A stretch of DNA of 64,000 nt, taken from assembly GCF_963921235.1 (NCBI RefSeq), contig NC_086101.1, positions 109,926,001-109,990,000 on the forward strand, given 5' to 3'. Position 1 is the stretch's first letter. Each line of letters starts with the position of its first letter. Below are positions 1,060 to 64,000 of the stretch, in pieces. A program made the translations under genes and the position numbers. The notes beneath the pieces are model-generated. The model was not told the origin of the DNA. It saw only the letters and a program-made list of their open reading frames with translations, and ran no database searches. This DNA comes from Mobula hypostoma (Eukaryota).

Positions 1060-1410
1060 TTTCTCTCTCCCCTCTCCCCCACTCCCTGTCTGATATCTTT
1101 CTCTCCATCTCACTCTGTCTTTGCCATCTTTTTTCTTTTTTCCATTTTTTCCTCTGTCTCTCACCTTATCTCCATCTGTCTCTCTCTATCTCTCTTTGCA
1201 TCTGCATACCCTCTCTTGTTTCACTTTTCAATATTACACTCTCTCCCTTTCTCTCTCTGCATGTCTCTGTACCCTCTCTCTTTCTATGTGTTTCTTTGAC
1301 TCTTCCCTCTCTCCATCCCTCCCTCTCTCTTTCTCTCTTCTTCTTTCTCCTCCTATTCTCTCGAGTCCCTCTCCCACACTCACTCACTCTCCTTCTCTCT
1401 CAATGTTGTC
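1060..1410. repeat. CT-rich low-complexity tract ahead of the gene 1 leader-exon acceptor
   Basis: Degenerate (CT)n run ending just before TTTCCTCTGCAG (AG at 1435-1436). Confidence 0.9.
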
Positions 1411-1458
1411 CATTGTCTTTTGTATTTCCTCTGCAGGTCAGCTCCTGTGCTCCCGGCA

Positions 1459-1522
1459 ATGGCGGCACCCAGAGTCCTCCTGCTGCTCCTCCTCATGACA
1501 CTCACATTCAGCTCTGCAAAGG
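1459..1522 (+). CDS. Gene 1 exon: signal peptide MAAPRVLLLLLLMTLTFSSAK
   Basis: Acceptor ctgcag| at 1436, Kozak-like GGCAATGG, hydrophobic core, phase-1 donor G|GTAAGT at 1522/1523. Confidence 0.88.
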
Positions 1523-1628
1523 GTAAGTCTCCGCCGCCTCACTTTCCTCTGACAAGAACACCCCAACCTTACCACATCTGCAGCACGCTCCAATACTCCC
1601 AAGCTCTCTGGAGATTGGAGGCTAATCC

Positions 1629-3350
1629 TTGGAGTATTTTGCATCAGTCTTCACTGAGGAAGACATCAGCAGTGTACCGGACACTCAAGGGTGGCAGAGA
1701 AGAGAAGTGTGCGCAGTCACAATTACGACAGAGAAAGTACTCAGGAAGCTGAATAGTCTAAAGGTAGATAAATCTCCCGGACCAGATGGAATGCACCCTC
1801 GTGTTCTGAAGGAAGTAGCTGTGGAGATTGCGGAGGCATTAGCGATGATCTTTCAAAAGTCGATAGATTCTAGCATGGTTCCGGAGGACTGGAAGATTGC
1901 AAATGTCACTCCGCTATTTAAGAAGGGGGCAAGGAAGCAAAAAGGAAATTATAGACCTGTTAGCTTGACATTGGTGGTTGGGAAGTTGTTGGAGCCGATT
2001 GTCAAGGATGAGGTTACAGAGTACCTGAAGGCATATGACAAGATAGGCAGAACTCAGCATGGATTCCTTAAAGGAAAATCCTGCCTGACAAACCTATTAC
2101 AATATTTTGAGGAAATTACAAGTAGGCTAGACAAGGGAGATGCAGTGGATGTTGTATATTTGGATTTTCAGAAGGCCTTTGACAAGGTGCCACACATGAG
2201 GCTACTTAACAAGATAAGAGCCCATGGAATTACAGGAAAGTTACATACATGGATAGGGTGTTGGCTGATTGGCAGGAAACAGAGTGGGAATAAAGGGATC
2301 CTATTCTGGTTGGCTGCCGGTTACCAGTGGTATTCCACAGGGGTCCGTGTTGGGGCCGCTTCTTTTAACATTGTACATTAACGATTTGGATTATGGAATA
2401 GATGGCTTTGTGGCTAAGTTTGCTGACGATACAAAGATAGATGGAGGGGCTGGTAGTGCTGAGAAAACAGAGAGTCTGCAGAGAGACTTGGATAGATTGG
2501 AAGAATGGGCAAAGAAGTGGCAAATAAAGTACAATGTTGGAAAGTGTATGATTATGCACTTTGGCAGAAGAAATAAATGGGCAGACTATCATTTAGATGG
2601 GGAAAGAATTCAAAGTTCTGAGATGCAACGGGACTTGGGAATCCTCATGCAGGATACCCTTAAGGTTAACCTCCAGGTTAAGTCGGTGGTGAAGAAGGCA
2701 AATGCAATGTTGGCATTCATTTCTAGAGGAATAGAGTATAGGAGCAGGGATGTGATATTGAGGCTCTATAAGGCGCTGGTGAGACCTCACTTGGAGTACT
2801 GTGGGCAGTTTTGGTCTGCTTATTTAAGAAAGGATGCGCTGACGTTGGAGAGGGTACAGAGAAGATTCACTAGAATGATTCCGGGAATGAGAGGGTTAAC
2901 ATATGGGGAACGTTTGTCCGCTCTTGGACTGTATTCCTAGGATGTTAGAAGAATGAGGGGAGACCTCATAGAAACATTTCGAATGTTGAAAGGCATGGAC
3001 AGAGTGGATGTGGCAAAGTTGTTTCCTATGATGGGGGACTCTAGTACGAGAGGGCATGACTTAAGGATTGAAGGGCGCCCATTCAGAACAGAAATGCGAA
3101 GAAATTCTTTTAGCCAGAGGGTGGTGAATCTGTGGAATTTGTTGCCACGGGCGGCAGTGGAGGCCAAGTCATTGGGTGTACTTAAGGCAGAGATTGATAG
3201 GTATCTGAGTAGCCAGGGCACCAAAGGTTATGGTGAGAAGGCCGGGGAGTGGGTCTAAATGGGAGAATGGATGAGCTCATGATAAAATGGCGGAGAAGAC
3301 TCGATGGGCCGAATGGCCGACTTCTGCTCCTTTGTTTTATGGTCTTATGG
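1629..3350 (+). mobile_element. 5'-truncated CR1 LINE (RT domain plus 3' tail)
   Basis: ORFs 1629-2381, 2269-2940 and 2953-3258 carry KSPGPDG, NYRPVSLT, YLDFQKAFDKVPH, PQGSVLGP and KFADDT motifs; frameshifted; CR1-type 3' end. Confidence 0.95.
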
Positions 3351-3489
3351 TCTAACCCCACTGCTCAAACATGGAAGGATCAATTCATTGGAGAATAAGT
3401 CTCTGTTTAGGTTCATTCAAATATCTGGATATTAGAGGGGTAGCAAAGATCAGGAGTACTGGGAATGAGGCGAGCCACCAACAGTCTGC

Positions 3490-3950
3490 TGGAGAAATGC
3501 TGTGGGACCATAAGACCAGCAAAGGAGCAGAATTAGGCCACTTGCCCCAGCAAGTCCGGTCCACCATTCCATCATAGCTCATTCCTTATTTCTCTCAACA
3601 CTGTTCTCCTGCCTTCACCCTATAATCTTTGACACCCTTACTAATCAAGAACCTATCAATCTCCACCTTGAATGTATCCAATGACTTTGCCTCCACAGTT
3701 GTCTATGGCAATGAATTCCAGATTCACACCTCTCGTTAAATAAATTCCTCCTCATCTCTGTTCTAAAGGGACGTTCTAGAGGCTGTGGCCACTGGTCCTA
3801 GGCTCACCCACCATTCTCTCTACATCCACTCTATCCAGGCCTTTCAATATTTGATAGGTTTCAATGAGATCCCCCCTCATTCTTCTAAACTCCAGCGGGT
3901 GCAGACCTGAAGCCATCAAATACTCCTCGTATGTTAACCCCAAGTTTTGA
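3490..3950 (-). mobile_element. CR1 LINE 3' fragment
   Basis: ORF 3776-4027 contains LEFRRMRGDLIETYQILKGLDRVD. Confidence 0.8.
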
Positions 3951-5119
3951 GCAGAACCTGTGGTAAGAAAAGAATTACTGTATTGACGTTTTGGGTCAAA
4001 GCTGTGCATCAGGGCATGGAGAGGCATGATGGCCCATTGTAACGAGGAGGTGAAAAAGAATTTTGAGGCGGTTGGTGGACGGAGGAGGGGTTGTGAGATG
4101 TCAGCCGGGTACTGCTAGGTGGGGGAGAAGGAGAGTGGGTGGAGTTGGGGGACGCTGATGGGTGAATGATGGATAGAGGCAGACAAAGAGGGGCAAAGAG
4201 GGCGAGAGAGAGGTTAAAGATTAACACAGATTGAGCGGGGAGGTGGGGAGTGTGGCATCTCCTGCTGGAGGGAGATAAGAATCCAGTGAGAGGAGAATGG
4301 CCATTGTTGGTGGGGAGGGGGAAGGAAGATCCTGTGTGGGATGTAGCTGGATGGACCCAGGAGTGGGAGGGAGACAAAGATGACAGATGGGTGCCTGGGA
4401 AAGGAGACTTAAGTGGGAGGCTCAGAGGAGAATCAGAAGGTTGGGGGGAAGGGAGGAATAAAAGAAGAAGGTAAGGGGGCAAGCATTTTGAATGTTAATA
4501 GTTAAGTGATTCATCTTTTAATTGGCACTGTGCCGTGTCCATCAAGATGAGTGATGTATCATAGAATCGTACGTTGTTGAAACAGACCCTTCAGCCCAAT
4601 TCGTTTATGCCGACCCCAATGCCCTCTGAGTTAGTCCCATTTGCCTGCGTCAACCAACTGCTGGACATACTCAGCAAGCCGGGCAGCATCCATGGAGAGA
4701 GAAATAAAGTCAATGCTTCAGGTTTGGCACTTTTCGTTGGAGGTGAGAAAGAGAGAAATGAATTGGTTTAGGTGGAGTCACAAATGATAGAAGTCAAAAT
4801 AAAAACTATTATCAGAGTTACCATACACTACCTTGAGATTCATTTCTTGCAGGTATTTGCTACAAAATAAATGCAATAGAATTTTTGACAACATAAACAA
4901 TGCCATGCAATATTTATTGCTTATTTATTATGATTATTATTTATTTCTTTTTGTACTTGCCCAGTGTGGTGTCTGTTGTATGCTGGTTGAACACCCAGTT
5001 TGGTGCAGTCATTCTGTTATGGTTATTATTCCATAGATTTATTGAGATTGCTGCAAGAAAATGAATCTCATGGTTGTATATGGTGACATATATGCACTTT
5101 GATAATAAATTTACTTTGA

Positions 5120-5710
5120 ACTTGACACAGTGACACAGTTTGAGTGTGACACTGTGTATGTGTAGCCCAGTGTGAGTGTGACACAGTAAGGCTGTGACGC
5201 TGTGAGTGTGACACCTGTGTGATTGTGACACAGTGTGATAGTGACACTGAGTGACTCTGGATGTGAGTGTCACACTGGGTGTGATTGTGACTCGGGGTGT
5301 GAGTGTGGCCAGTGTATGTGGCCCAGTGCGAGCATGACTTCAGGTGTGAGTATGATGCAGTGTGATTGTGACTCTGGGTGTTTGTAACACTTGTGTGAAT
5401 GTGACACTGTGAGTATGACTCTGGGTGCGAGTGACTCAGTGTGAATGCGACACTGTGAGTGTGCGCTGTGTGTGTGACCCAGTGTGAGCATGACTTCGGG
5501 TGTGAGTATGATGCAGTGTGTGCATGGACCAGTGTGAGTGTGACCAGTGGACTCCAGGTGTGAGTATGATGCAGTGTGAATGTTATACACTGCGTGAGTG
5601 TAACTGAGTGTGAATGTGCCACAATGTGAGTGTAACTTTGGTGTGAATGTGGCTCTGGGTGTGAGTGTGACTCCGTGTACAAGTGTGACACAGTGTGAGT
5701 GTGACCCAGT
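5120..5710. repeat. Degenerate GT-rich tandem repeat immediately upstream of the gene 1 V exon
   Basis: Recurrent GTGTGAGTATGATGCAGTGTG / GTGACTCTGGGTG units. Confidence 0.85.
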
Positions 5711-5748
5711 ACCGCTCTCTCCACTGACGTACCTGTATCCCGTTCCAG

Positions 5749-6096
5749 CGAGGATCCAATGCAACAAGCATAAGGAAGACATCGACGCGGTGAGTGGCTC
5801 CTGGGTCCTACTGCCCTGCCAGTTCAACTGGACAGGGGTGGTGCCTGAGGTGCAGCGTGCGGTCTGGCAGAAGGACTCCATGGTGGTGCACAACACAGAC
5901 CCTCAGCAGCAGAAACACCAGGACCGCATGTACGCGGACCGCACCTCCGTGGCCGCCAACTGGTTCGAGAAGAAAGATCCCTCGCTGAATCTGACCGGGC
6001 TCACTGTGAATGACACTGGAATCTACGAATGCAGGGTGAACACCGACCGGCCACAATCCTTCGACACCTGTGCCACCATCAAACTGACCGTCACTG
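5749..6096 (+). CDS. Gene 1 exon: IgV domain, B7/butyrophilin-like
   Basis: Branch-like CTGAC, acceptor ttccag| at 5748, donor G|GTGGGT at 6096; 348 nt, phase 1-1, open. Motifs VLLPCQF (B strand), AVWQK (C), Y.DRTS, SLNLTGLTVNDTGIYECRV (E/F), IKLTVT (G). Confidence 0.92.
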
Positions 6097-6179
6097 GTGG
6101 GTCCCTCGGTGGCTCTTTGACCGTGGGAAGCAGCTCATGCTGCGCCTGGAGTTGGCCGGAGGGGGGAGTTGATGGGGTG

Positions 6180-6730
6180 GAGGGGTGAGGAAGGGGTGGG
6201 GGTTGTAAGGGAAGTGGTGGGGATATAGAGGAGTGGTTAGTGGAAAGGTTGGTGGCGGAGAGTTTAGGAAAGGAGGGGATGGGGATGGAGAGTGTGGTGG
6301 GGAAACGAGGTCCCAGTGTAACCGTTGTTCTACCAACCAGGTGACCCGAGTGAAGGAGGGGAAGAGGTATCCCGAACCTCACCCTATTTTCCTCGTCTCC
6401 CCCACTCCAATCCCCAATTTCACTCCTCCATTTCCCATCTCTCCCATTTCCTCTATCTCCCCTCTTCCCTCACCCCTCTTTGCTTCCCTCCCTCCCTCAT
6501 CCCTCCACACTCCCTTCCTCCCTCCATCCCTCTCCCTTCCTCCCTCCATCCCTCTCCCTTCATCCCACTGCCTCTTCCACTCCTCCACCCACCCATCCCA
6601 GATCCTGCTTCACAGACTTCCCAAACTTTAACCCCTCTCGTCTCCTTTCTAAACTTTAACCCCTTGCCCCTCCCTCTCCCGACCCCCATCCTGTCCCTCA
6701 ATCCTGCATGCTCCTCTCTGTCCTCACCCC
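6180..6730. repeat. Purine-rich then pyrimidine-rich low-complexity intron
   Basis: G/A-rich 6180-6300 followed by a C/T-rich run 6380-6730. Confidence 0.8.
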
Positions 6731-6891
6731 ATGTTTCACCTCGTTGGCTCCCTTACTGTTGGGGGTAGGTGGTAGAAGGGTGGATTGTCTGCAGGTTGGT
6801 TGAGAGTTGCCTCGTCATTGGAGTAAACAGTGGGGATGGGGGGAGTGCGGACAGGTTGAACGAGATGGTGAGACTGTCTCTCGTTGTGCAG

Positions 6892-6965
6892 ATGCTGCCG
6901 GTGCCGTGTTTGGGCCCACTATACTCCTCTTCATTGGCCTGGCGCTTGGAACCTTCTTCAGCTGA
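6892..6965 (+). CDS. Gene 1 last coding exon: C-terminal hydrophobic peptide DAAGAVFGPTILLFIGLALGTFFS* (GPI-signal-like)
   Basis: Acceptor gttgtgcag| at 6891, in phase with the V exon; stop TGA 6963-6965; donor CAG|GTGGGT at 6990/6991 in the 3' UTR. Total CDS 64+348+74=486 nt. Confidence 0.8.
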
Positions 6966-7089
6966 TGGGATCCGGAACAGAACGTGTCAGGTGGGTGGGG
7001 GTGGGCCGGAGTAGTGGGCGCGGCTAGAAGGTCCATCAAATTGCTTCTACCTTCCACCTCACTGTCCCACTCTGTCCGCACACTCTGAA

Positions 7090-7430
7090 TCCCTCACTCC
7101 TCCTCCCTTCCTCCCCTCCTCCTCCCTCCCCTCGTTCCCCCTCTTCTCCTTCCTCCCCTCCTCCCCTCCTCCCCTCCTCCCCTTCCCTCCCCTCCCCTCC
7201 TCCCCTCCCCTCCTCCCCTCCCCTCCTCCCCCTCCGTCCTCTCCTCCCCCTCCGTCCTCTCCTCCCCCTCCGTCCTCTCCTCCCCCTCTGTCCTCTCCTC
7301 CCCCTCTCTCCTCTCCTGCCCCTCCCTCCTCTCCTCCCCTCCCTCCTTCCTCCCCGTCCCTCTCTCCTCCCATTCCTCCTCCCTCCCTTCCTCCTCCCTC
7401 CCTCCTCTTCATTCCCCTCTCCCCCAACCC
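7090..7430. repeat. Polypyrimidine (CCT/CCCCT) tract with about 4 copies of an 18-bp unit CCCCCTCCGTCCTCTCCT
   Basis: Read directly from the sequence. Confidence 0.9.
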
Positions 7431-8199
7431 TGGCCCCACAGGAACAGGCTCTCCAGCCCCCAAACTCTGTGCTGACCATGCTGCTAATCTAACGTGATCC
7501 CCTCTTGCACGTGGTCTCAATCCCCTCAATCTCTGCCTGTGCGTGTGCCTGTCTCAATGCCTGTTAACACTGCCATCGTGTGTTGCGGGTTTATTGATGT
7601 AACTCCATTCGTGGCTGACCCTGAATTCAGGTAATGAATGACATTGATTAATGCGTCCGACAGGACTTTCATTTATATTTTCTAACAAATAGAATTTCTG
7701 ATTTATAAGTAATTTGATCGGCAGTCTGGACAGGGTAGATGTTGAAAGTTGTTGACAGTGGAAGAGTTTTGAACAAGGGGACAGTGCTACAGGATTAGAT
7801 GGTGATCATTTTAAAATTAGGTCTTCTATCAGAGGGCATTGAACCTCTGGAAATGTCTGCCCCTCAGGGAGGATGAAGGCTGGATCAGTCAATATAATGA
7901 CAATGAACAGAGATAAATATTTGGACAGATCAAGGGATTGAGGTTTATGGGGAACAGGCTCAGAAGAGGAGCTGCAGATCAGCAGGAAATGGCTGAGTTG
8001 CCTTGAGAGGTCTAAATGGCCAAATGGTGGCAATGGAGAAGTTCCAGAGGAGGTTCGCAGGCATGATCGCAGGAATGAAAGGGTTAGCGTATGGGGAGTG
8101 ATTGATGGCTCTGGGCTCTTCAATCACAGACCAGGTGCAGGGTTTTGACCCAAAGCATTGATAATTCCTTTCTTCCCACAAATGCTGCTCATCCCTTAT

Positions 8200-21789: not shown

Positions 21790-24640
21790 AGGTCCCATTC
21801 TGAAGTGGGAGGGTGATCAGCCAGATGTCATGGTGCACATCGGTACCAATGACATAGCAAGGAAGAGTGAGGAGGTCCTGGAAAGTGAGTATAGAGAGCT
21901 TGGTAGGAAGTTGAAACGCAGGACCTCAAGGGTGGTAATCTCAGGATTGCTACCTGTGCTAGGTGCCAGTGAGGGTAGGAATAGGATGCTCTGGAGGAGG
22001 AGCAAGTGGCTGAGGAACTGGTGTAGGGGGCAGGGTTTCAGATTTCAGGATCATCGGGATCTCTTCTGGGGCAGGTGGGACCTGTACAAGAGAGACGGGT
22101 TATACTTGAACCACAGGGGGACCAATATCCTTTCAGGGAGGTTTGTTAGTGCTATTAGGGAGGCTTTAAACTAGATTTGCAGGGGGATGGGAACCAGAGT
22201 GCCAGAGCTGACAGTGTGGCTGGGGTGAAAATAAATGATGTTGAAAGTTTAAGCAAATCCACTGATAGAAAGGTTGTGAGTGGTGGTAAAAATCTTCTGA
22301 GGTGTATATATTTCAATGCTAGGAGTATTGCGGGGAAGGCAGATGAGTTGAGGGCGTGGATTGACACGTGGAATTATGATGTTGTAGCAATTAGTGAAAC
22401 TTGGCTACAGGAGGGGCAGGACTGGCAGCTTAATATTCCACGGTTCCGATGTTTCAGATATGATCGAGGCAGAGGAATGAAAGGTGGGGGAGTAGCATTG
22501 CTTGTTAGGGAAAATATTACAGCAGTGCTCAGGCAGGACAGATTAGAGGGCTTGTCTACTGAGTCCTTATGGGTGGAGCTGAGAAACAGGAAAGGTATGG
22601 CCACATTAGTGGGATTGTATTACAGACCACCCAATAGTCAATGAGACTTGGAAGAGCAAATCTGCAGAGAGATAGCAGGCAACTGCAGGAAACATAAAGT
22701 TGTGGTGGTAGGGGATTTTAATTTTCCATACATTGATTGGGACTCCCATACTGTTAGGGGTCTAGATGGTTTAGAGTTTGCAAAATGTGCTCAGGAAAGT
22801 TTTCTAAATCAATACATAGAGGGACCAACTAGAGGGGGTGCAATATTGGATCTCCTGTTAGGAAACGAATTAGGGCAAGTGACAGAAGTCTGTGTAGGGG
22901 AGCACTTTGGTTCCAGTGATCATAACACCATTAGTTTCAATTTGATCATGGACAAGGATAGATCTGGTCCTAGGGTTGAGGTTCTGAACTGGAAGAAGGC
23001 CAAATTTGAAGAAATGAGAAAGGATCTAAAAAGCGTGGATTGGGACAGGTTGTTCTCTGGCAAAGATGTAATTGGTAGGTGGGAAGCCTTCAAAGGGGAA
23101 ATTTTGAGAGTGCAGAGTTTGTATGTTCCTGTCAGGATTAAAGGCAAATTGAATAGGAATAAGGAACCTTGGTTCTCAAGGGATATTGCAACTCTGATAA
23201 AGAAGAAGAGGGAGTTGTATGAAATGTATAGGAAACAAGGGGTAAATCAGGTGCTTGAGGAGTATAAGAAGTGCAAAAAAATACTTAAGAAAGAAATCAA
23301 GAGGGCTAAAAGAAGACCTGAGGTTGCCTTGGCAGTCAAAGTGAAGGATAATCCAAAGATCTTTTACAAGTGTATTAAGAGCAAAAGGATTGTAAGGGAT
23401 AAAATTGGTCCTCTTGAAGATCAGAGTGGTTGGCTTTGTGCGGAACCAAAGGAAATGGGGGAGATCTTAAATAGGTTTTTTTGCGTCTGTATTTACTAAG
23501 GAAGCTGACATGAAATCTATGGAATTGAGGGAATCAAGTAGTGAGACCATGGAAACTGTACAGATTGAAAAGGAGGAGGTGCTTGCTGTCTTGAGAAAAA
23601 TTAAAGTGGATAAATCCCCGGGACCTGACAGAGTGTTCCCTCGGACCTAGAAGGAGACTAGTGTTGAAATTGCGGGGGCTCTGGCAGAAATATTTAAAAT
23701 GTCGCTGTCTACGGGTGAAATGCCGGAGGATTGGAGAGTGGCTCATGTTGTTCCGTTGTTTAAAAAAGGATCGAAAAGTAATCCGGGAAATTATAGGCCG
23801 GTGAGTTTAACGTCAGTAGTAGGTAAGTTATTGGAGGGAGTACTAAGAGACAGAATCTACAAGCATTTGGATAGACAGGGGCTTATTAGGGAGAGTCAAC
23901 ATGGCTTTGTGCGTGGTAGGTCATGTTTGACCAATCTGCTGGAGTTTTTCGAGGAGGTTACCAGGAAAGTGGATTAAGGGATGGCAGTGAATATTGTCTA
24001 CATGGACTTCAGTAAGGCCTTTGACAAGGTCCCGCATGGGAGGTTAGTTAGGAAAATTCAGTCGCTAGGTATACATGGAGAGGTGGTAAATTGGATTAGA
24101 CTTTGGCTCGATGGAAGAAGCCAGAGAGTGGTGGTAGAGAATTGCTTCTCTGAGTGGAGGCCTGTGACTAGTGGTGTGCTACAGGGATCGGTGCTGGGTC
24201 CATTGTTATTCGTCATCTATATCAATGATCTGGATGATAATGTGGTAAATTGGATCAGCAAGTTTGCTGATGATACAAAGATTGGAGGTGTAGTAGACAG
24301 TGAGGAAGGTTTTCAGAGCCTGCAGAGGGACTTGGACCAGCTGGAAAAATGGGCTGAAAAATGGCAGATGGAGTTTAATACTGACAAGTGTGAGGTCTTT
24401 GCACGTTGGAAGGACAAACCAACGTAGAACATACAGGGTTAATGGTAAGGTACTGAGGAGTGCAGTGGAACAGAGGGATCTGGGAATACAGATACAAAAT
24501 TCCCTAAAAGTGTCGTCACAGGTAGATAGGGTTGTAAAGAGAGCTTTTGGGACTAGGACAGTGGGACTAGGCAGAAAATGGTTCGGCACAGCCAAGAAGG
24601 GCCAAAGGGCCTGTTTCTGTGCTGTAGTTTCTATGGTTCT
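21790..24640 (+). mobile_element. CR1 LINE, ORF1 end plus ORF2 (APE endonuclease and RT), internally disrupted
   Basis: VHIGTND (ORF1 esterase); YFNARSI, ISETWL, VVGDFN, SSDHN (endonuclease); NYRPVSLT, FSKAFDKVPH, QGSVLGP, KFADDT (RT); several in-frame stops. Confidence 0.95.
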
Positions 24641-25289
24641 ATGGTTCTCAGCCCAGAACGTTGACTACCTCTTCCAATAGATGCTGCCTGGCCTGCTGCG
24701 TTCCACCAGCATTTTGGGTGTGTTGCTAGAAGTGGACCATTTGGATGATCTAATGAGGATTAAGATGTAACTTTAATCTGGTTGCAAAATTAATCTGGAC
24801 ATTGTTTATAGGCCACGGATTTGTGATACAGACAGATACAGAAAAGTTGACAAAACTTGAAAGAACTTCTTTGTTGTATTTCATTATACCCTCAGTTAAT
24901 AAATAAAATCAAAAGTATGTGATATTTTTCAATTTCTATTCTAAATATTCTCAGTATGCATTTACAAAAATATTAAAGTGCTGTGCAGATTTCGGGTTGT
25001 GTAAAAAGTTTCTTGAAATTTCCAAAAAATTGGAGGGAACACTGTTTTGCTCTTAGCCTTTGAAAATGCAGCACCACACATTTATCCAGATTAAACTCAA
25101 TCCTCCATTTCCCTGCCTGCACTTCCAGCTGGTCCACATTCACTGAACCCTTTGACAACCTCCCTTACAATCCACAACTTGACCAATTCTTCTGTCGTCT
25201 CCAAGATTGCGAATCAGCCCAGCTAAGTGTTGGACCAGGTCATTTACACAGAGTGGCCACGTTATCCGGTACCTCCTTTACCTAACAAA

Positions 25290-27261: not shown

Positions 27262-27739
27262 CTCTTCCCCCACCAAATTTAGTCATGTCCTCATGACTTC
27301 TAAATAACTCGCCAACCCTTCCTGCAGACACAAACCTCAGTCCAGGTACAAACAGTGACATTGCTCCCCAAACAGTAGACCTTATGCCCTGTTCCCCAGG
27401 CGCTACGTAGGCCAACCTATCTGGGAGTTTCCTGGTCCTCCGAGACCTCTGTACCCCCTCACCCAAACCCTTCAGGGTCGGACTCTACTGGGGATACCTT
27501 GGGTCTGCTTGCCGAATCCTCTCTCAATCTCTCACTCATGCCCCCCCTCCCCCCCCCACCGTCTCTTCTTCAGGGTCCTGCAGTAACCCAGGCTGCCCAC
27601 AGCTAGCCACCCCCACCTCACCTGACTCAGTGGGAGAAGGGCCAGGAGTCTCTTCATCCAGCAAGGGGAAGTTAGCGAAAGGCAGTATGTACCACACCTC
27701 CATCTCATCATCTGTCGAATCTGTATTCTTCCCCTTTTT

Positions 27740-28300
27740 CTCGATCGGTAGCTGCTGGTTGGTTCTCTCCACGCTGGAGCACTTGGCCTGGACTGCTTCT
27801 GCAGTCTCTTCAGCCTCCCGTAATCCAGACGACAGCTTCCTCTTGGATTCCTCCAACTCTCGCCGCAGTCTCAGCTGTTCTGACTAATGCTTCTTGGCCA
27901 TCTCAGTCTGGGACTCAGTTACTCCATCAGCTTCTTCCACCCGACGTGAAAAGCAGCAGGTAAAGAGTGTTCAGCCTCCAGTTTAGTGTTCACTGAAATT
28001 ATCTCCAGTTTTTTCTTCCTAATTACTTTTTCCAGATCAACTTTCAGTTTTCCCACTTCATTTAAACTGTCGATGGTCATCTTCTCATTCCCTTCAAGCT
28101 TCCGCTTCCCTCTTCCGAGATCTGGCCGCAACTGCTTCACCTCCTCGGAAGTGTAGTCAAACCCCCCTCTCTGGGCTCTCGATTTTCTGTTGGCCTTAGT
28201 CAGACAGCTTTCTTTGTCTTCCCCAACTTGCAAGTCTTCCAACTGGTTCTGGATCACTTTCTCCAGTCTCTGCTGGGAATTCTGTCTCTCCGTCTTCACT
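27740..28300 (-). pseudogene. Intronless myosin heavy chain rod fragments (closest recalled match MYH16-type) inside the Gypsy element
   Basis: [18 protein letters not shown]...[44 protein letters not shown]; [21 protein letters not shown]; ESKRKL...[21 protein letters not shown]. These match three separate sarcomeric MYH rod segments. Confidence 0.8.
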
Positions 28301-30344
28301 TCAAACTTGATCCCATAGAGACAGTCACTCACGAGCTGCGACCTTCACCAGACCTGGCACGTGTCCAGCGAAAGCTTTAACTCTTTAGTTCTCAGCCGCT
28401 CGTGCAACAGCCTCGCTTCATATTCTTCTGAGGCAGATCCAAATACTAGGAGATCATCCAAATGCACCAAAAATCCAAATGATTTCACATCCCCCACCGT
28501 CTTCCTCATGCCCCGCTGGAAAGTTGCAAGGGCTCCAGATATGCCCTGGAACGTCTTTTCGGATTGCAAGAATCCCAGGGGACTTATAACGGCCGTCTTC
28601 TCCTTGTCAGCCTCACTCATTGGGATCTGGCAACATCCACTCCTCAGATCCAGCACATTGAACCACTTCACACCTCTCAAACAGACCAGCGCGTCTTCCA
28701 CCCTCGGGACCGCATACTGGTCAGGGACTGTGCTCCTGTTCAGAGTCCTAGAACCCACACAACCTCCACACACGCTACCTATGTCTTCCACGGCTGCAGG
28801 GGCCAGTCGCCATGACCTCTCTGTCACCGAGGTGTCTTCAGCAGTCAACTCCCCCCTACCCCTTTGTGGTATTTCGGAGCATCCACTAAGAGGGCTTCAC
28901 TCTCAGATACTCCCCCAGGCCGTACCACCATTAGCTCTTATTTAACTTCGGTACCTTGGCCAATGCTGCCATACACGTCCTCACAAGCAGCTCGAAACAC
29001 TGCGTGCACAGATAATGCCCCCAGACAGCTCTCACCCGCCTTCCTCTGGCAGGCCCCCATGTGCTTCTACACAAGTGGGGTGTGGATCCCCTCCCGAGTT
29101 GACATGCTTCCCGTCTCAACAGTGTCCGGACACATCAGCTCTAATGACTCACAAACCTCAGACACCCACACCTTGGCCTCCGAGAACTCCAGTTTCACTG
29201 ACCAATAATCGTCTTCTGGATGATCCCCAGTACGGATACTCCAAATCTCCAACTCCCTGAATGGTGTCAAAAGTAAATGCTTCAAATACCAGTTGTAAAA
29301 CAAACTGTACAGCAACTTGACCTGCGCCCCAGTGTCAAGGATGGCCTTAGCATAGCTTCCATGTCTCTGTAACGACACACAGGGGTGTGGTCCCTCTAAG
29401 CTTTCAGGAATAGGGTCTTTTCCTTTCGGGAGTTCCTTGGTACATTGCTGGGAACATGTTCCCCCAGAGACCCCAAGCCGTTCCCCTACTGGGCCTCCAC
29501 TAAGTCTCCCGACACCTCTCTGATCAGCTGAACAACTGAGGGAAGGGCTGATCCCCTTAAATGATCCCCCTGGCACTGCAAGAAATTTAGCTGCCCTCTT
29601 AGCCAGAGAAGATACACTGAAAACTTTCCCCCAATCTCCTGACACTGGTATGGAAAGCCCCCCAGGTGCTGTATGTTACTTCCAATTGAGCCAAATGCAT
29701 TTTCCCACACTTTCAGATAACTGGCCGTTGTCACTATGGGGTAATTGACCCTGACAGTTGTAACATCATCAGCAGCCCACCTACTCAAACTTTCAACCAA
29801 TCCCTGTCACTTTCCCTCAACCGAGCACTGCCTCTCATCTAACAACTGAGAGATTCGTTCCGCCCACATCTTGTATGCCTCCACCCCTTTAGGGGTGGGC
29901 ATTATTCCAAAGGAAAAACTGAGTCTGCCGTAGTGGGAACATCTATTCGCCAGAGAAACAAAGGTGGACACTAACTCAGAATTCTCACTCTTCACTTGGG
30001 GACGAGGGCTGATTAAACATTCCAATTCAGACCACTCTTCCCCCTCCCTCCTGACAGTATGGACAGCCCCTGGCCCCGCCTCACCCAGGGCACCCATAGA
30101 CACTGGCAATCCCACCTCTGTGACGTCAGCGCTAGCCCCCACTAAAGAAAGGTCTGAGCCTGCCATTTCGTCAATTTTTTGCACTACGACTTCAAACTCA
30201 CCATCAGCTTTAACCATACCCAAAAATCAAATTAACAATTCATCCAAGGTATGAATATCCAGCCCATTACTAACCCCAATCCCACAGAGGCACACCAGCA
30301 CTGATTTAAACAGGGCAAACACACAGCACCCTACAAAAATCCAT

Positions 30345-31848: not shown

Positions 31849-32400
31849 GTGAGTAGACCCAGCTCTAGTCGTCACCCCTTCACTCAAGAGTTTGACAAGA
31901 GGGGAGGGATGTTTTCAATAGTGGGTGCGTCTGGGACCAGAGGGAATATCCTCAGAATAGAAGTAAGTCCCTTTACAACAGGGATGAGGAGGAATTTGTT
32001 CAGCCAGAGTGTGGTAAATCTGTGGAATTCATTGCCACAGACAACTGTGGAGGCTACGTCTCTGGGTGTACTTAAAGCAGAGTTCAATGGTTAATGACTA
32101 ATAAGGGTGTTAATGGTTAAGGGAAGAAGGCAGAAGAGTGGCTATGAGGGGGATAATAAATCAGCTGGGATTGAATGGTGGAGCAGACTCGATGGAACAA
32201 ATGGCCTAAATGTGCTCCTAGGTCTTATGGTGTAATGGTCACCTCTTCCTCCCCACCCCTCTTGTCTTAGGGTGAAGGTTAGTCCATCAGCTAGGGGGGC
32301 AGGGGCTTGTCTGGTGCCGAGTGTTACAGGCTGCTTGTCTGCCAGCTGAGATGCGGTCAGAGGTTCCCAAATGACTGTTTGCTCCCTCCCTTTCCCTCAG

Positions 32401-32769
32401 CACGGTCCAGTGGAAGTGGGTTTCGGGTGCAGCAGGCAAGCAACGTGGAAGGTAAAGAGGGTGAGTCCGTCACTCTCCCCTGCTCCTTCACGTACCCGGA
32501 CACCTCCACACCCAGACGCATCGACATTAGATGGAGAGTCGGTAACTACAACGGCACATATATATTCAGTTCCTTACTGAACCACACCACCCACGAATAC
32601 CGAGGCCGGATTGAGTTCCTGGGCTCCCCACTGCAAGACAAGACCGGTTCTATCCACTTACACCGGCTGAACCAAGTGGACTCCAACACCTATTTCTGTG
32701 GCATGACCATGTTTGGGGAAGAAAATAAGATGTGGCAGGGCGCCTCAGGGACCATCCTGAAAGTGAACG
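32401..32769 (+). CDS. Gene 2 IgV exon A, PILR-like
   Basis: Acceptor tttccctcag|, donor G|GTGAGC; 369 nt, phase 1-1, open; VTLPCSFTYP, IRWRVGNY, YRGRI, GSIHLHRL..DSNTYFC, WQGASGTILKVN. Confidence 0.92.
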
Positions 32770-32924
32770 GTGAGCTGGTGCTTCCAAGTTTTCTTCTTCT
32801 TAGCTGGATAATGATTCCAATCAATCTGAAAACACCCTTCCCCCAAAACACACACATGCACAGCCCTCCTGAGAGGCTCATTGACCAGGTGAATGTTTTC
32901 ATTTCCAAATGTTTCAACACCTGC

Positions 32925-33495
32925 ATACACTCAGTGGCCACCTCCTGTATCTAATACAGTGGCCACAGTGCGTATGTTCATGGCCTTCTGCTGCTGTAGC
33001 CCATCCACTTTGAGGTTTGATGTTTAGTGTGATCAGAGATGCTCATCTGCACACCAACACTGTAACACATGGCTACTTGAGTTACTGTCGCTTCCTGTCT
33101 GCTTGAACCCGTCTGGCCAACATCCTCTGAAATTTTTCAATAATAAAGCATTTTCACCCACAGAACCGTCAATCACTGGATTTTTTTTGTTTTTTTTCAC
33201 ACCATTCTCTGTAATCTTTAGCAATTGTTGTGTGTGAAGATCCCAGGAGATCAATAGTTTCTGGGATTCTGAATCCACTGTGTCTGGCAACAACAATTAC
33301 TCCATGGAGTCACTGAGTCAAAGTCACTGAGATCAAATTTCGTTCCCATTCTGATATTTGGTCTGTGCAACACCTTAACCTTTTGACCATGCCTGTGTTT
33401 TACACACTGTGTTGCTGACGCATGATTGGCTGATTGGGTATTTGCACTTATGAGGACCGTACAGATGCACCTAGTAAAATGGCCACTGAGTTTCC
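32925..33495 (-). mobile_element. Tc1-derived deletion element (5' of duplication unit B)
   Basis: CACTCAGTGGCCAC / GGCCACTGAG termini; same family. Confidence 0.8.
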
Positions 33496-33750: not shown

Positions 33751-34279
33751 TGTTGTGGACCCAGCTCGAGTTGCTCTAGACCCAGCTCAGGAGTTTGACA
33801 AGAAGGGAGGGGTGTTTCCAGTAGTGGGGGAGTCTGGGACCAGAGGGCACAGCCTCACAATACACCCTTTACAGAAGTGAGGAAGGATTTCTTCAGCCAG
33901 AGCGTGGTAAGTCTGTGGAATTCATGGCCACAGACGGCTGTGCAGGCCATGTTATTGGGCATATTTAATGTGGAGTTTCAAAGGTTATTGATTAGTAGAG
34001 GTGTCAACTGTTAAGAGGAGAAGGCTGAAGAATGGCCTTGAGAGGGATAATAAATTATCTGGGATTGAATGGCAGAGCAGACTCGATGGAACGAATAGCC
34101 TCTCTCCTAGGTCTTATGGTTACATGTTCCTCCCTCCCCTCTTTTCTTAGAGTGGAGTTTAGTCTACCAGCCAGGGCAGGGGCTTGTTAGGTGCTGAGAG
34201 TATTATGGACTTGTTGCCTGCAGGATGAGATGCGGTCAGAGGTTCCCAAATGACTGTTTTCTCCCTGCCTTTCCCTCAG

Positions 34280-34648
34280 CACGGTCCAGTGGAAGTGGGT
34301 TTTGGGTGCAGCAGGCAAGCAACGTGGAAGGTAAAGAGGGTGAGTCCGTCACTCTCCCCTGCTCCTTCACGTACCCGGACACCTCCACACCCAGACGCAT
34401 CGACATTAGATGGAGAGTCGGTAACTACAACGGCACATATATATTCAGTTCCTTACTGAACTACACCATCCACGAATACCGAGGCCGGATTGAGTTCCTG
34501 GGCTCCCCACTGCAAGACAAGACCGGTTCTATCCACTTACACCGGCTGAACCAAGTGGACTCCAACACCTATTTCTGTGGCATGACCATGTTTGGGGAAG
34601 AAAATAAGATGAGGCAGAGCGCCTCTGGGACCGTCCTGAAAGTGAACG
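34280..34648 (+). CDS. IgV exon B, near-identical to exon A
   Basis: Intact AG/GT, 369 nt, open; 7 substitutions versus A (R>W, H>Y, T>I, W>R, G>S, I>V, one silent). Confidence 0.85.
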
Positions 34649-34794
34649 GTGAGCTGGTGCTTCAAAGTTTCTGTTCTTGGTTGGATAATAATTGTGATGA
34701 GCCTGAAAACAACCGTCGTACAAACACCTCCCCAGAGGCTGTCTGACCAGCTGAATATTTCGACCAGTTCATAGTTTTCATTTCCGAATGTTTC

Positions 34795-42080: not shown

Positions 42081-42216
42081 TATGGGCTGGTTTTCTGTCC
42101 ACAGTCTGAGGGCAGGGGCTTGTCTGATGCTAAGAGTATTATGGGTTGATTGGCTGCCTGGTGCAATGTGGTTGGAGGTTGCCAAAATGACAGTTTGCTC
42201 ACTCCCTTTCTCTCAG

Positions 42217-42599
42217 CGCAGACTGATGGATGTGGGTTCTGGTTGGAGAATCCGGCATACATAGAGGCTATAGAGAAGGGGACTACTACTCTTCTCTGCT
42301 CCCTCACTTACCCAGATATCTACACACCCGGAGACATTCATATCTCATGGAAAGTTGATCATTTCAGGACAGATATATTCACGTTTTTGCTAAACAAGAC
42401 AATTGGTGAATACCGAGGCCGGATCGAGTTGCTGGGCAACCGTCTTCGAGACAAGATGGGCTCCATCCGCTTACATCGGCTGAAAGGAAGTGACTCCAAT
42501 TTCTATTTCTGCCGTGTGACAATTTTGGAAGATCATCATCAGCTGATAGAATGGCAAAGCATCTCGGGGACGTTTCTGTCAGTGAGAAATGGGTCCTGA
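42217..42599 (+). CDS. IgV exon C, PILR-like, homologous donor lost, reads into NGS* stop
   Basis: Acceptor tctctcag| at 42216; open frame ...DIHISWKVDHFR...YRGRI...DSNFYFCRV...WQSISGTFLSVR; roughly half the residues identical to A by hand alignment; ATGGGT at 42589-42594 where A/B have GTGAGC; TGA 42597-42599. Confidence 0.75.
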
Positions 42600-59809: not shown

Positions 59810-61331
59810 AGATTCAGCTTTATTGTCATTGTACAGAGTACGGATACAAAGCCAATGAAATGCAGTTAGCATCTAACCAGAAATGCAAAGAATAGTATTA
59901 TTTACAAAATAACTGCAAACAAAAAGTAAGTGCTACAGCACACAAATATAAAAGTACTGAGATAGTACAATATTAGCGCAATACTGCTTAGCACTGTGAT
60001 GTGAGGTTCAGCAGGGTCACAGCCTCAGGGAAGAAGCTCTTCCTGTGCCTGCTGGTGCGGGAGCAGAGGCTCCTGTAGCGTCTACCAGATGGGAGGAGAG
60101 TGAAAAGTCCATGGTTAGGGTGAGATGCATCCCTGATAATTCTTTTCACCCTGCCCAGGCAGTGTTTATAGTAGATGTTCTCAATGGTGGGCAATTGGAT
60201 GCCGACAATCTGCTGGACGGTTTTCACAACACGCTGGAATGCTTTGCGGTCCAATACAGGACAATTGCCATACCACACTGAGATGCAGTTGGTGAGTATG
60301 CTCTCAATGGTACAGTGGTAAAAGTCCGTCAGTATCCTGGGACAGAGGTGAGCTTTCTTGATGCTCCGCAGGAAATAAAGACGCTGTTGCGCCTTTTTGA
60401 TCAGGATGGAGGAGTTCAGGGACCAGGTAAGATCCTCAGAAATGTGGACACCAAGGAATTTGAAGCTTGATACATGCTCCACTACAGCTCTGTTGATGTA
60501 GATGGGGACGTGAGTGTGGCTCCTAGCATGCCTGAAGTCCACAATGATCTCCTTGGTCTTCTGGGTGTTAAGGGCCAGGTTGTTGTCGGCACACCATGCA
60601 GCCTCGTCCCTGTGGGCCATCTTGTCATCCCCTCTGATCAGGCCAACCACCGTGGTGTCGTCTGCGAACTTGATAATGGAGTTAGAACCACGTACGGGAA
60701 TGCAGTCATAGGTGAAAAGGGAGTACAGAAGAGGGCTCAGCACACAGCCTTGAGGCACGCCGGTGTTCAGGGTGAGAGTGGAGGAGGAGAGGTTGTCTAA
60801 CTTAACTGATTGGGGTCTGTTAGTCAGAAAGTCCAAGGTCCAATTGCAGAGTGATACACTGATACCAAGCTGGCGAAGTTTGGCGATCAGCTTGGAGGAG
60901 CTCACGGTATTGAATGCCGAACTAAAGTCAATGAACAGCATTCTGATGCAAGAGTTGGGGCTGTCCAGGTGGGTCAGGGCAGAGTGAAGTGCCGTGGAGA
61001 TGGCATCCTCTGTTGACCTGTTGGTGCGATAGGTAAATTGATGAGGGTCCAGGGTAGAGGGCAGACAGGATTTCAGATGTGATAGAACCAGTCTCTCAAA
61101 GCACTTTGCAATGATGGGGGTGAGTGCAACTGGGCGGAAGTCATTCAGGCCCGTGGCAGTGGAATGCTTCGGCGCTGGCATGATGGTGGTGATCTTGAAG
61201 CTTGTGGGGACAACTGCCTGGGCCAGGGACAGATTAAAAATGTCCGTGAAGACCCCGGCCAACTGCCCTGCACAGACTCTGAGCACACGGCCGGGTATTC
61301 CATCCGGACCAGCTGCCTTCCGTACATTCAC
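59810..61331 (-). mobile_element. Rex1/Babar LINE, 5'-truncated, with an open 447-aa RT ORF (59988-61331)
   Basis: [56 protein letters not shown]. Confidence 0.95.
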
Positions 61332-61793: not shown

Positions 61794-64000
61794 TGTCACG
61801 TGACCAGCAACAATGAATATAGAAATGTGTCAGGTTTTATAAACAAATAAACATTTATCAAACTCTGCTCAAAATTAGTAAAAAGATAAACAAACGAAAA
61901 CCTTAACCGGAAGTAAACTGCTATGCAGCCATTTAACAAACCACTAAACTCATTACTAGTTCTTAAAGCAGTAAATGCAAACACAGTCTTAAAGTGGTAA
62001 ATTAGAACACAGTTCTTAGAATGGTAAATTTGAAAGTCCAACAGATTTATACAGTCAATTGGGAGAAACTTTCCTGAGGTAAAGAATTCCTCGAAGACTT
62101 GACATTACTGCCGATCCCAGCCAGAACCTGCCTTGTCCGCAGGACTCATGTTGACAGAAATAAAACAGTTTAAGGGCACTGACCTTTTTCCTCCATAGAC
62201 TAGATACTGCACAAACTTTTCTGCTGCTTTTAGCAGAGGTTATCTCTTGGAGATCTCTCTTACTTGAACAAATTCAATAAAGGTTGATCCTATCCAAAAC
62301 CGCTGAACTACTCCTTCAGGTTCCCATCTTCACTCTCCAATATTACTGAAAAGGTACGTCAACAAACCTGGCAGCGATTGGTTAAACTGCCGGCCCAACA
62401 CTTCTGTACCTTACAATAGAAAGTAAAACTGTTAAAACAAAACTGCGTAATAAAAAAATACGCAGCAATACCGAGTAACTGACGAAATAAATTTAAAACT
62501 CAACTGGGAAAACTAACTGCGTCAGCAGGGGTCTACCCTTATATAAACCTGCTGAGAACAGGTCATCACATGACCTCACATCGGCAGGAAATTTTACATC
62601 ATGTGACCTCCACAAGACCATTACATTATCCTCATAAAACAGTCACAAGATATCCATGAAGTATGTAACACTTCCATCCAAAAAAATTTTGGTCTTTTAG
62701 GAGCAAAATTTTAACAGTTAACTATTTACCAAAAAAAAACAAATATATAAAATTTACAACTTATACAATATACACAGCATTATCATACAGCATTTTGCAA
62801 ACTAATATACAGTAGCAGTGTTACAAGTGTTAAAATATCACTCCATTAAAAAAAATTACATTGTACATTTAACATCTAGGTACACCATCAGCGATCATAT
62901 TATCTTTACCTTTAATATGGGTTATCAAAATATTATACTCCTGTAATATCAAACTTTGTTGCTAAATTGGAGTTTGATTTATTTCCTTAACCATTTTCTT
63001 TAACTGAGCCCAGACCTACAACATAACAAAGGTGAGTCACAGTGGCATGGCCAAATTCACTCTTAGCTAAGTTAATAGTTAAGTTAGCTTTTAAAAGTCT
63101 CTCAAATAGTTTCTCCACCGCAGTAATATATGCTTTCCAAGTATTATTTCCTGTCACTAAATCATCAATATGGGCATCTGTATCTTTTAACCCATGAATC
63201 ACACTATTAAACATCTGTTGGAAAGTTCCTGATGCATTCTTCATCCAAAATGGAAGAACATTACATTCATATAACCCAGATGGAATTACAAGTGCAGAAA
63301 TCTCTCTATCTCTATCCGTCAATGGAACACACCAATAACCTCTTAACAAATTAATTTTTGTAAGAAACTTTGCTTGCCCAACTTTATCCACACAATCATC
63401 TAACCTAGGGATTGGATATGCATCAGTTTTTGTCACAGCATTCACCTTCCTATAATCTGTACAAAACCTAATACTATTGTCTGGCTTAGGCACCATAATA
63501 CACGGTGAACTCCAATTTGAATTAGAAGGTCTAATAATATTATTCTCTAGCATATACTTAATTTCCTGTTCAGAAAGTTCACATTTTTCCTTGTTCATCT
63601 GATACGGATGTTTTATGGGTTTTGCGTCTCCAACATCTACATGTGAAGCTATGGTGGTTCTTCTAGAACGTCTGGAAATAAATCCCTATATTTAAAAATT
63701 AACTGTTTCATCTGCTCTCTCTGCTCTGGCTGTAAATGAGATATTTTCTCATCAATATTTTCTAGAATTGTTGAATTTGGTAACCTGGCAGAAATAACGT
63801 TGGATTTAAAATGAATTTCAGATGAATCATCCATTAAGCTTTTAGAAAGATCAGACTCATTATTGACCACAATAGTCATAGTAGCAGCCTCTCTCTCATA
63901 ATACGGTTTTATCATATTTATATGACACAGCTGTGTTGGCTTTCTTCGATTTGGAGTTCTTATCAAGTAATCCACATAATTTACTTTAGATTTAATCTCA
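61794..64000 (-). mobile_element. Gmr1-type Gypsy element, 3' part (integrase tail, RT, RNase H end, 3' LTR 61794-62670)
   Basis: LTR ends TGTCACG...GTAACA with a purine tract (GGATGGAAG on minus) next to it; RT SNWSSPCIMVPKPDNSIRFCTDYRKVN; integrase-tail TPNRRKPTQLCHINMIKPY lies upstream of RT. Confidence 0.88.

Follow-up and report, generated by a model that had tools for sequence, protein, structure and literature searches.

LOC134346907 of Mobula hypostoma, a gene lying in a window of 64,000 nucleotides (the whole stretch of DNA analysed), probably encodes a very small GPI-anchored surface protein. Its precursor is best read as a cleavable signal peptide, one V-set domain of B7/butyrophilin (B7/BTN) type and a C-terminal GPI-attachment signal. 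The gene is real and functional and has three coding exons. It is already known to NCBI as an uncharacterised prediction, and the protein has never been studied.

When the window sequence is read directly, the coding exons of LOC134346907 (ATG 1459-1522, 5749-6096 and 6892-6966) join into a reading frame of 161 aa, with canonical splice sites and with every coding boundary in phase 1. The translation ends in DAAGAVFGPTILLFIGLALGTFFS followed by the stop codon, the ending already given in the first-pass annotation, and the product agrees letter for letter with XP_062904813/4, 'uncharacterized protein LOC134346907 isoform X2 [Mobula hypostoma]' (NCBI). Isoform X1 (224 aa) differs solely by an N-terminal extension from an upstream exon. 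Such extensions, both in isoform X1 and in the models of other species, are not conserved, therefore the methionine at 1459 is taken as the real start. The features of the locus are as follows.

1437..1522, + strand: exon 1, with a 5' UTR of 22 nt (1437-1458), the start codon at 1459 and the predicted signal peptide M1-A22 (up to the first base of codon 22); acceptor ctctgcag|G at 1437, donor AAAGG|gtaagt at 1522.
1523..5748, + strand: intron 1, phase 1, with a LINE-type reverse-transcriptase fragment (~1629-3258; RT motifs in translations of its open reading frames) and other repeats.
5749..6096, + strand: exon 2, the whole V-set domain (A22-T137) in one exon; borders ccgttccag|C ... CACTG|gtgggt.
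6097..6891, + strand: intron 2, phase 1, CT-rich and of low complexity, with GT...AG boundaries.
6892..6966, + strand: exon 3, coding part, with D138-A-A (putative omega region), the spacer GAVFGPT, the hydrophobic ILLFIGLALGTFFS and the stop (TGA 6964-6966); acceptor ttgtgcag|A at 6892.
6967..6990, + strand: first 24 nt of the 3' UTR, up to a GT donor after 6990; the transcript goes on in one or more exons beyond 7100.

Expression of the gene is evidenced by transcript contigs from four runs representing three related organisms. In all four the contigs cover 1437-1522, 5748-6095 and 6891-~6992 at a depth uniform within each run, and the unique stretches of the introns (4074-4455, 5220-5601 and 6175-6747) have no coverage at all, which shows that spliced transcripts use exactly these exons. 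The junctions 1522/5749 and 6096/6892 were deduced from piece coordinates and bin depths. In every run the first bin corresponds to ~86 nt of exon 1, exon 2 appears as one 348-nt piece within contigs of 671-3788 nt, and the bin 6939-7100 holds ~54 covered nt, so that coverage stops near 6992; past exon 3 the contigs go on for another 375 to ~3255 nt. The repeat parts of intron 1 show very high contig depth, which comes from other copies of the repeats. None of the aligned contigs skips 6892-6990. Since the transcripts cover the three exons without unique intron, the C-terminal exon is indeed used, with no C-domain or TM+tail exon in its place; nor did tblastn, with the second domains of the paralogues among the queries, find an exon of this kind elsewhere in the window. 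The earlier proposal of three in-phase exons giving a 161-aa protein is thus borne out by the sequence, by identity with the NCBI record and by the contigs, which fit both proposed junctions.

As judged from its sequence, LOC134346907 is conserved across sharks and rays. Orthologues are 80-81% identical in the stingrays Hemitrygon and Hypanus and 48-50% identical in the sharks Heptranchias and Rhincodon, and the three-exon arrangement is shared, as seen at the Heptranchias locus, where exon 3 ends in the same TTCTTCAGCTGA. The signal peptide is conserved in the orthologues as well. It could be argued that the model is an annotation artefact or a decaying pseudogene whose exons are in phase by chance and which makes no functional protein, given that it lies in TE-rich DNA and that in one related organism nonsynonymous changes outnumber synonymous ones by 6 to 2. 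In the other related organism, however, a single nonsynonymous change stands against 5 synonymous ones, the reading frame is intact in 3 organisms, the two relatives among them, spliced transcripts occur in 4 runs, and rays and sharks alike have kept the frame, the four cysteines and the C-terminal exon. This explanation is already largely refuted and hardly credible.

By sequence and by fold, the N-terminal domain is a V-set of B7/BTN type. The product of exon 2 matches the Pfam V-set family at 8.4e-11, and a family profile run against PDB finds its best single-domain matches in CD276 (5e-16), VTCN1 (7e-16), MOG (1e-15), PD-L1 (6.5e-13) and BTN3A1 (3e-12). An AlphaFold2 model built on an 85-row alignment reaches a pLDDT of 90; its best Foldseek matches are the PD-L1 IgV domain, B7-H4, ICOSL and MOG, and the ESM Atlas structure matches are headed by clusters of CD276, BTN (BTN1A1-like), PD-L1, MOG-like proteins and HHLA2. 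All structure searches (n=4; Foldseek and ESM Atlas) returned B7/butyrophilin-like domains. The grouping with B7/BTN suggested in the first-pass annotation therefore holds, the profile scoring best on CD276, VTCN1 and MOG and the structures being in agreement. Four conserved cysteines (C26, C45, C116 and C129) and N-glycosylation sequons at N48, N102 and N109 are found in the domain. C45 and C116 form the canonical B-F disulfide, and C26 and C129 are expected to make a second, family-specific pair.

The V domain shares with B7/BTN proteins the pattern W-Q...V-V-H...Q-D...R-T...A-S-L-x-L...D-x-G-x-Y-x-C, and B7-H3 (CD276), B7-H4 (VTCN1), MOG, PD-L1 and the butyrophilins likewise carry their V-set in one phase-1 exon. 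MOG is, like the Mobula protein, a V-only member of the B7/BTN group. Identity to B7/BTN proteins is nevertheless just 15-25%, and the C26/C129 pair and an R-T-x5-W-F motif of the Mobula protein are absent from them. In contrast to B7/BTN proteins, the Mobula protein lacks a membrane-proximal C domain, a TM segment and a cytoplasmic tail: no constant-type Ig domain follows the V domain, which leads straight to the hydrophobic end, and in place of a type I TM segment with a tail the protein stops one residue past the hydrophobic stretch. It does not belong, then, to the B7 family proper, with its V and C1-like domains, TM segment and tail.

On sequence grounds the protein can be placed as one orthogroup of an unnamed multigene family of B7-like V proteins in elasmobranchs and amphibians, distinguished by the extra cysteine pair C26 and C129. 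Family invariants are C26, C45, F47, W61, R86, W93, G112, Y114, C116 and C129; in a 26-sequence alignment the columns of C26, C45, W61, R86, W93, Y114, C116 and C129 are invariant or conserved to at least 90%, and the Mobula protein fits them. A signature regular expression of the family matches 38 of the 168 proteins fetched. In the tree the protein sits in its orthogroup clade with support of 81/84, within one of three elasmobranch subfamilies. NCBI has automatically named members of the family VTCN1-like, CD276 antigen-like, MOG-like and ICOS ligand-like, and in Heptranchias the family genes are clustered on one chromosome. The Mobula orthogroup is the shortest form and lacks both a stalk and a second Ig domain; elsewhere in the family the V domain is extended by a long polar stalk, by another Ig domain or by a true TM segment with a basic tail. 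The second domain of the two-domain relatives is I/C2-like and not of the C1-like type of B7, so it is the V domain alone that carries the kinship with B7 proper. As far as seen here, the family occurs only in cartilaginous fish and amphibians. GPI-like ends are found in several further members, and an N-A-A-G-A-V omega region is retained in subfamily B. The molecule had been put forward as an unusual one; a single V domain with a GPI-type end stands, but within a multigene family having several such ends it is less singular than supposed.

Cartilaginous fish also possess single-V receptors of the CD28 family, CD28H-like 1-3 and CD28X, which occur in some non-mammalian tetrapods as well and were lost in mammals (PMC11599192). 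The Mobula protein resembles them in its single V domain and in a proline at C+7 after the F-strand cysteine, cf. Y-x-C-x4-E-I-P (PMC11599192). Its FG loop reads N-T-D-R-P, without E-I-P or P-P-P, and the TM segment and cytoplasmic signalling motifs of CD28H-like and CD28X are missing. The combination of FG-loop motif, TM segment and cytoplasmic Tyr-based motif described for the CD28 family (PMC11599192) is accordingly not present. Six accessions of the four-cysteine family do not appear in the supplements of PMC11599192, and both sequence and fold matches favour B7/BTN ligands over CD28-type receptors.

Thy-1 has a precursor of ~161 aa with a single V-like Ig domain, two disulfides, three N-glycan sites and stalkless GPI attachment at the end of the domain; the Mobula protein is alike in overall architecture. 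Thy-1 is presented as a small GPI-anchored IgSF protein in PMC6416198. An elasmobranch orthologue of Thy-1 outside the B7 lineage would share the 161-aa precursor, the one V-like domain, the four cysteines, the three sequons and the GPI-type end, and a Thy-1 cluster does occur among the ESM Atlas feature look-alikes (score 0.93). The profile and fold searches nonetheless brought out no specific relation to Thy-1, and such orthology is very improbable. Thy-1 is absent from the 30 best Swiss-Prot fold matches, which include PD-L1, MOG, ICOSL and VTCN1, and from the PDB profile matches, which are V domains of B7/BTN. The closest paralogues, unlike Thy-1, include proteins built of V, a second Ig domain and a TM segment, and the extra cysteines of the Mobula protein fall, by sequence position, where strand A ends and inside strand G, and not at the attachment residue.

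Both ends of the precursor carry features of processing signals. On inspection, the core of M1-A22 is rich in Leu and its -3/-1 positions are occupied by small residues (S-S-A or A-K-A), as in a signal peptide, and the segment is a helix in the AlphaFold2 model. At the other end D138-A-A, invariant in the orthogroup, is followed by the 7-residue spacer GAVFGPT and a final run of 14 hydrophobic residues, moderate in hydrophobicity and rich in Gly/Pro, with no K/R in the tail and a single residue after the best hydrophobic window. Small residues at omega and omega+2, a spacer of ~5-10 residues and an uncharged hydrophobic end, all scored by rule, are thus in place, and the C-terminus fits a GPI signal; on these rule-based features GPI anchoring is the most likely outcome. 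The features named in the first-pass annotation, D138-A139-A140 and a hydrophobic end without basic residues, were found and are conserved in sharks and rays up to the stop. Such anchoring has a possible precedent: B7-H4 was proposed to be GPI-linked, being partly sensitive to PI-PLC (PMC3817299).

The common ending of the orthologues is T-DAA-x7-LLxxGLAxxxFS-stop. The exon 3 tail is conserved in the Hemitrygon, Hypanus, Heptranchias and Rhincodon proteins, in Heptranchias also at the DNA level through the stop, and ray and shark share 13/24 residues in the tail and 54/115 in the V domain, which would seem more than is expected of a peptide that is merely cleaved off. This conservation, similar to that of the V domain and including LLxxGLA and the terminal F-S, could reflect helix-helix contacts in a tail-less type I membrane protein, whose 20 C-terminal uncharged residues would remain as a TM helix, leaving practically nothing on the cytoplasmic side; within the bilayer this helix may contact a partner chain. 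The uncharged stretch G141-F160 (~20 residues) is long enough to span a membrane, and its 19-residue Kyte-Doolittle mean of 2.05 (1.97-2.31, with 3-4 Gly/Pro, among the orthogroup tails by the same rule) lies within the TM range. Yet 4 of its residues are Gly or Pro, and most true TM segments of the family (2.0-3.3) exceed it in hydrophobicity. In the true-TM relatives 14-61 residues come after the segment, in most cases with 1-7 K/R among the first 12, whereas the Mobula segment is followed by one residue and no basic stop-transfer residues. The invariant small D-A-A stands 9-10 residues upstream, as GPI signals require. A tail-less TM protein is an unlikely alternative to the GPI-anchored form.

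A mainly secreted V-domain decoy, which loses its hydrophobic end or quickly sheds its anchor and whose functional form is not membrane-bound, is rather improbable. Soluble forms are described for GPI proteins and for B7-H4 (PMC2760136), and no stalk separates the V domain from the putative omega site; against this, all complete orthologues retain the hydrophobic C-terminal exon, and no transcript without it occurs among the aligned contigs.

If the GPI-anchored form is correct, the signal peptide would be cut off after A20 or A22, and the V domain would fold and take up to three N-glycans. GPI transamidase would then cleave at the invariant D138-A-A, with D138 as the most likely omega residue, and pass the domain to a GPI lipid. 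The product would be a glycoprotein of ~115 residues, its V domain sitting almost directly on the outer membrane leaflet: a Thy-1-like architecture made from a V domain of the B7 lineage. Having no cytoplasmic part, the protein could work only through another receptor, as its ligand or co-factor at the cell surface in trans or in cis, or else in a soluble form after shedding.

The threshold at which lymphocytes become active is set by B7/butyrophilin ligands and their CD28-type receptors, and as recently as 2024 new CD28-family receptors that have no known ligand were reported from sharks (PMC11599192). It may be speculated, with considerable reserve, that the four-cysteine family, of which the Mobula protein is the minimal, stalkless, V-only form of GPI type, is the missing ligand set for the orphan CD28H-like 1/2 or CD28X, or else that the Mobula protein is a Thy-1-like cis regulator of B7 lineage. 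Were either true, early jawed vertebrates would have had a system of lipid-anchored checkpoint ligands that humans lack. No new principle is involved, as single-Ig GPI proteins (Thy-1) and possibly GPI-linked B7-H4 are already known. The gene nevertheless illustrates how a B7-type V domain can be reshaped into a Thy-1-like minimal surface protein. It can be said that LOC134346907 encodes a conserved, expressed, V-only and probably lipid-anchored B7-like candidate ligand or regulator, and as such it bears on the B7/CD28 network of early jawed vertebrates, which is still being reconstructed.

The coding part of LOC134346907 was read directly from the sequence, and all its splice sites are canonical with phase 1 at every coding junction.

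Exons of LOC134346907 in window coordinates (slash: exon border)
1437-1522, forward strand: exon 1, with an AG acceptor before 1437, ATG at 1459 and the end AAAGG/gtaagt
5749-6096, forward strand: exon 2, from ccgttccag/C to CACTG/gtgggt
From 6892, with the donor GT after 6990, forward strand: exon 3, start ttgtgcag/A, TGA at 6964-6966

The joined coding sequence gives a protein of 161 aa with the C-terminal end DAAGAVFGPTILLFIGLALGTFFS, which confirms the three in-phase exons proposed by the first-pass annotation. In every residue it matches NCBI XP_062904813/XP_062904814 ([quoted passage not shown]); the gene is already predicted in NCBI and is uncharacterised there, and a literature search on LOC134346907 or on the family described below found no paper. 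Isoform X1 (224 aa) is longer solely at the N-terminus, where it is extended by an exon lying upstream of the window. The corresponding extensions in models from Hemitrygon, Hypanus and Rhincodon have unrelated sequences; they are therefore regarded as translated 5' UTR, and the conserved start is the methionine at 1459.

The window itself is TE-rich vertebrate DNA (G+C 45.7%, CpG observed/expected 0.34, zero N). Intron 1 holds a LINE-type reverse-transcriptase (RT) fragment at 1629-3258 (+), with ORFs carrying YLDFQKAFDKVPH and FADDTK motifs, whose copies are very abundant among the transcript contigs, reaching depths in the thousands. Further retroelement ORFs (21830-24680 (+), 27500-30250 (-), 59988-61331 (-) and 62987-63975 (-)) occupy much of the window and comprise LINE endonuclease and RT, LTR-retrotransposon fragments and a 447-aa RT ORF. 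Long CT-rich and GA-rich low-complexity tracts at 6370-6700 and 7040-7530, either side of the last coding exon, give rise to spurious long ORFs on both strands.

Expression was assessed by comparing transcript contigs of four public runs with positions 1400-7100; two runs come from an organism that shows no difference from the window in this interval, and the other two from two close relatives. Exon 2 is found as a single 348-nt piece in one contig per run (1211, 700, 671 and 3788 nt), and within each run the positions of exons 1, 2 and 3 share one depth value. Converted to covered length, the bin depths amount to about 86 nt for exon 1 (1437-1522), and to about 48 nt and about 54 nt for the intervals 6891-6938 and 6939-6992. 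Depth is zero on the unique intron parts 4074-4455, 5220-5601 and 6175-6747. Such exon-only depth indicates spliced transcripts with exactly the proposed exons, the two coding junctions being deduced from piece coordinates and depths. Exon 3 is used, and transcripts skipping 6892-6990 were seen in none of the four assemblies; the exon ends at the 6990 donor, 24 nt downstream of the stop codon, and the contigs continue into one or more 3' UTR exons beyond 7100. Elsewhere in the window no paralogue, C-domain exon or TM (transmembrane) and tail exon was found, including by tblastn with the second domains or TM and tail regions of paralogues. The ORF stays intact despite substitutions in both relatives, one with 1 nonsynonymous and 5 synonymous, the other, from sequencing run X18, with 6 and 2, mostly in the V domain (differences in the CDS at window positions 5863, 5881, 5938, 6039, 6061 and 6921). 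These counts hint at fast evolution of the V domain and are too small for selection to be called.

The only Pfam match of the product is V-set. When the profile of its family was compared with PDB, the best single domains were CD276 (5e-16), VTCN1 (7e-16), MOG (1e-15), PD-L1 (6.5e-13) and BTN3A1 (3e-12), while JAML and pIgR rank high solely through the summing of several domains. A single-sequence AlphaFold2 model (pLDDT 45) was discarded and replaced by a model from an 85-row alignment, which reached pLDDT 90. The best Foldseek matches of this model in PDB are PD-L1 IgV, sialoadhesin V, B7-H4 and ICOSL, those among Swiss-Prot models are PD-L1, MOG, TIGIT, TMIGD2 and ICOSL, with no entry for Thy-1 among the 30 best, and those among AFDB clusters are CD276, butyrophilin and PD-L1. 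An ESM Atlas search ranks MOG-like, HHLA2 and BTN1A1-like clusters first; a Thy-1 cluster is present among the language-model look-alikes. Sequence profile and structure searches thus support the B7/butyrophilin-type V domain that had been recognised at first reading. Full B7 membership is not supported by the predicted architecture, as the protein is without a C domain, a TM segment and a tail, and the second domain of the two-domain relatives looks I/C2-like, unlike that of B7 proper.

Other kinships were considered and rejected. A siglec/sialoadhesin reading (fold match of 27% identity) is contradicted by the presence of the canonical B-F disulfide and by the lack, across the family, of a conserved Arg after the F-strand cysteine. 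A PVRIG/TIGIT-like reading was prompted by PILR-like genes downstream; the TIGIT matches are weak, and PVR-type motifs were not recognised in the product. Three PILR-like V-set exons lie there (32307-32954, 34225-34746 and 42150-42599, all (+)) and weakly resemble the family (tblastn E about 1e-4 to 1e-3). A CD28H-like reading was dismissed on motifs and architecture, since the product shows none of the motifs that PMC11599192 gives for CD28H-like and CD28X; six family accessions sought in the supplements of that paper were not there.

The family in question is a four-cysteine B7-like V family of elasmobranchs and amphibians, whose hallmark is the canonical Ig cysteine pair, an extra cysteine pair and an R-T-x5-W-F motif. 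C45, F47, W61, R86, W93, G112, Y114, C116 and C129 (numbering of the 161-aa precursor) are invariant in an alignment of 26 sequences, and C26 is conserved in at least 90% of them. The sequence signature is present in 38 of 168 fetched proteins; members of known source come from sharks, rays, caecilians, frogs and salamanders, and NCBI has automatically named them VTCN1-like, CD276 antigen-like, MOG-like or ICOS ligand-like. Teleost multi-V proteins, placed at the top of the HMMER list by summed score, have no extra cysteine pair and are not counted here; they look like merged tandem V-TM genes. The C-termini of the family vary: a short GPI-like end (this orthogroup, and subfamily B, which keeps N-A-A-G-A-V), a long polar stalk with a GPI-like end, TM with a basic tail, V+Ig2+TM, and V+Ig2 with a GPI-like end, as in P0084. 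Four members lie on one chromosome of Heptranchias, three of them (L001, L002 and L004) at 24.26, 24.45 and 24.80 Mb of Heptranchias perlo CM068671.1 in a cluster of about 0.6 Mb; L004 is flanked by another V-set gene (294 aa) on the upstream side and by a 509-aa amino-oxidase gene on the downstream side. P0084 sits on a contig as long as this chromosome. P0059 and P0070, both of Heptranchias, are nearly identical in the V domain but differ at the C-terminus, with a GPI-like end in one and a TM segment and tail in the other, and P0147 of Rhinatrema is without the second Ig domain found in its close relative P0055. Both pairs suggest recent duplication or alternative splicing that may switch anchoring mode and domain number. 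The first-pass annotation had presented an unusual single-V GPI-type molecule; this reading stands, its singularity less so, as the gene's orthogroup is one within a multigene family in which several members are of the GPI type.

Orthologues were collected by an exhaustive HMMER search, with names obtained through cluster look-ups.

Orthologues of the LOC134346907 product
Hemitrygon akajei: 81% identity
Hypanus sabinus: 80% identity
Heptranchias perlo: 50% identity, 168 aa, auto-named "VTCN1-like"
Rhincodon typus: 48% identity
Chiloscyllium: partial sequence

In a maximum-likelihood tree this orthogroup is one clade (support 81/84), apart from two other elasmobranch subfamilies and the amphibian groups. 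The layout of Heptranchias locus L001 matches that of the ray (leader exon, single V exon, small terminal exon), and its exon 3 aligns to ray exon 3 through the common TTCTTCAGCTGA end. All complete orthologues finish T-(x)-DAA-x7-LLxxGLAxxxFS-stop.

This C-terminus has the textbook layout of a putative GPI signal. D-A-A is invariant in the orthogroup, 9-10 residues upstream of the hydrophobic core, and with omega at D138 both omega+1 and omega+2 would be Ala, followed by the spacer GAVFGPT and 14 hydrophobic residues to the end; the rule-based features put forward earlier (D-A-A, a terminal hydrophobic stretch, no basic residues) are present. Across the five complete sequences of the orthogroup, Kyte-Doolittle means of 1.97-2.31 are obtained for the best 19-residue window, which contains 3-4 Gly/Pro. 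A tail-less TM protein, in which the uncharged C-terminal stretch stays as a membrane-spanning segment, is a live alternative because this stretch is about 20 residues long and the tail is as well conserved as the V domain when ray and shark are compared (13/24 vs 54/115 identical). However, only one residue and no K/R follow the hydrophobic window of the orthogroup, unlike in family members with a true TM segment, where a segment of Kyte-Doolittle 2.0-3.3 is followed by 14-61 more residues; in every such member except one, the first 12 of these include 1-7 K/R. For a GPI-anchored product, B7-H4 is a precedent as a possibly GPI-linked B7 member (PMC3817299).

The observation and the reading of the first-pass annotation stand. 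Gene structure, transcription, conservation among orthologues and the B7/butyrophilin-like V fold are established by the analysis, and the following course can be proposed for the GPI-type protein. Cleavage of the signal peptide would occur after A20 or A22, disulfides would link C45 with C116 and C26 with C129, and up to three N-glycans (N48, N102, N109) might be added, after which transamidation near D138 would leave a stalkless V domain of about 115 residues tethered to the outer leaflet. Having no cytoplasmic part, such a protein could act only through partners, and its function as a ligand, a cis-regulator or a shed decoy is a matter of speculation. A possible connection with the orphan CD28-family receptors found in non-mammalian vertebrates is the most interesting prospect.
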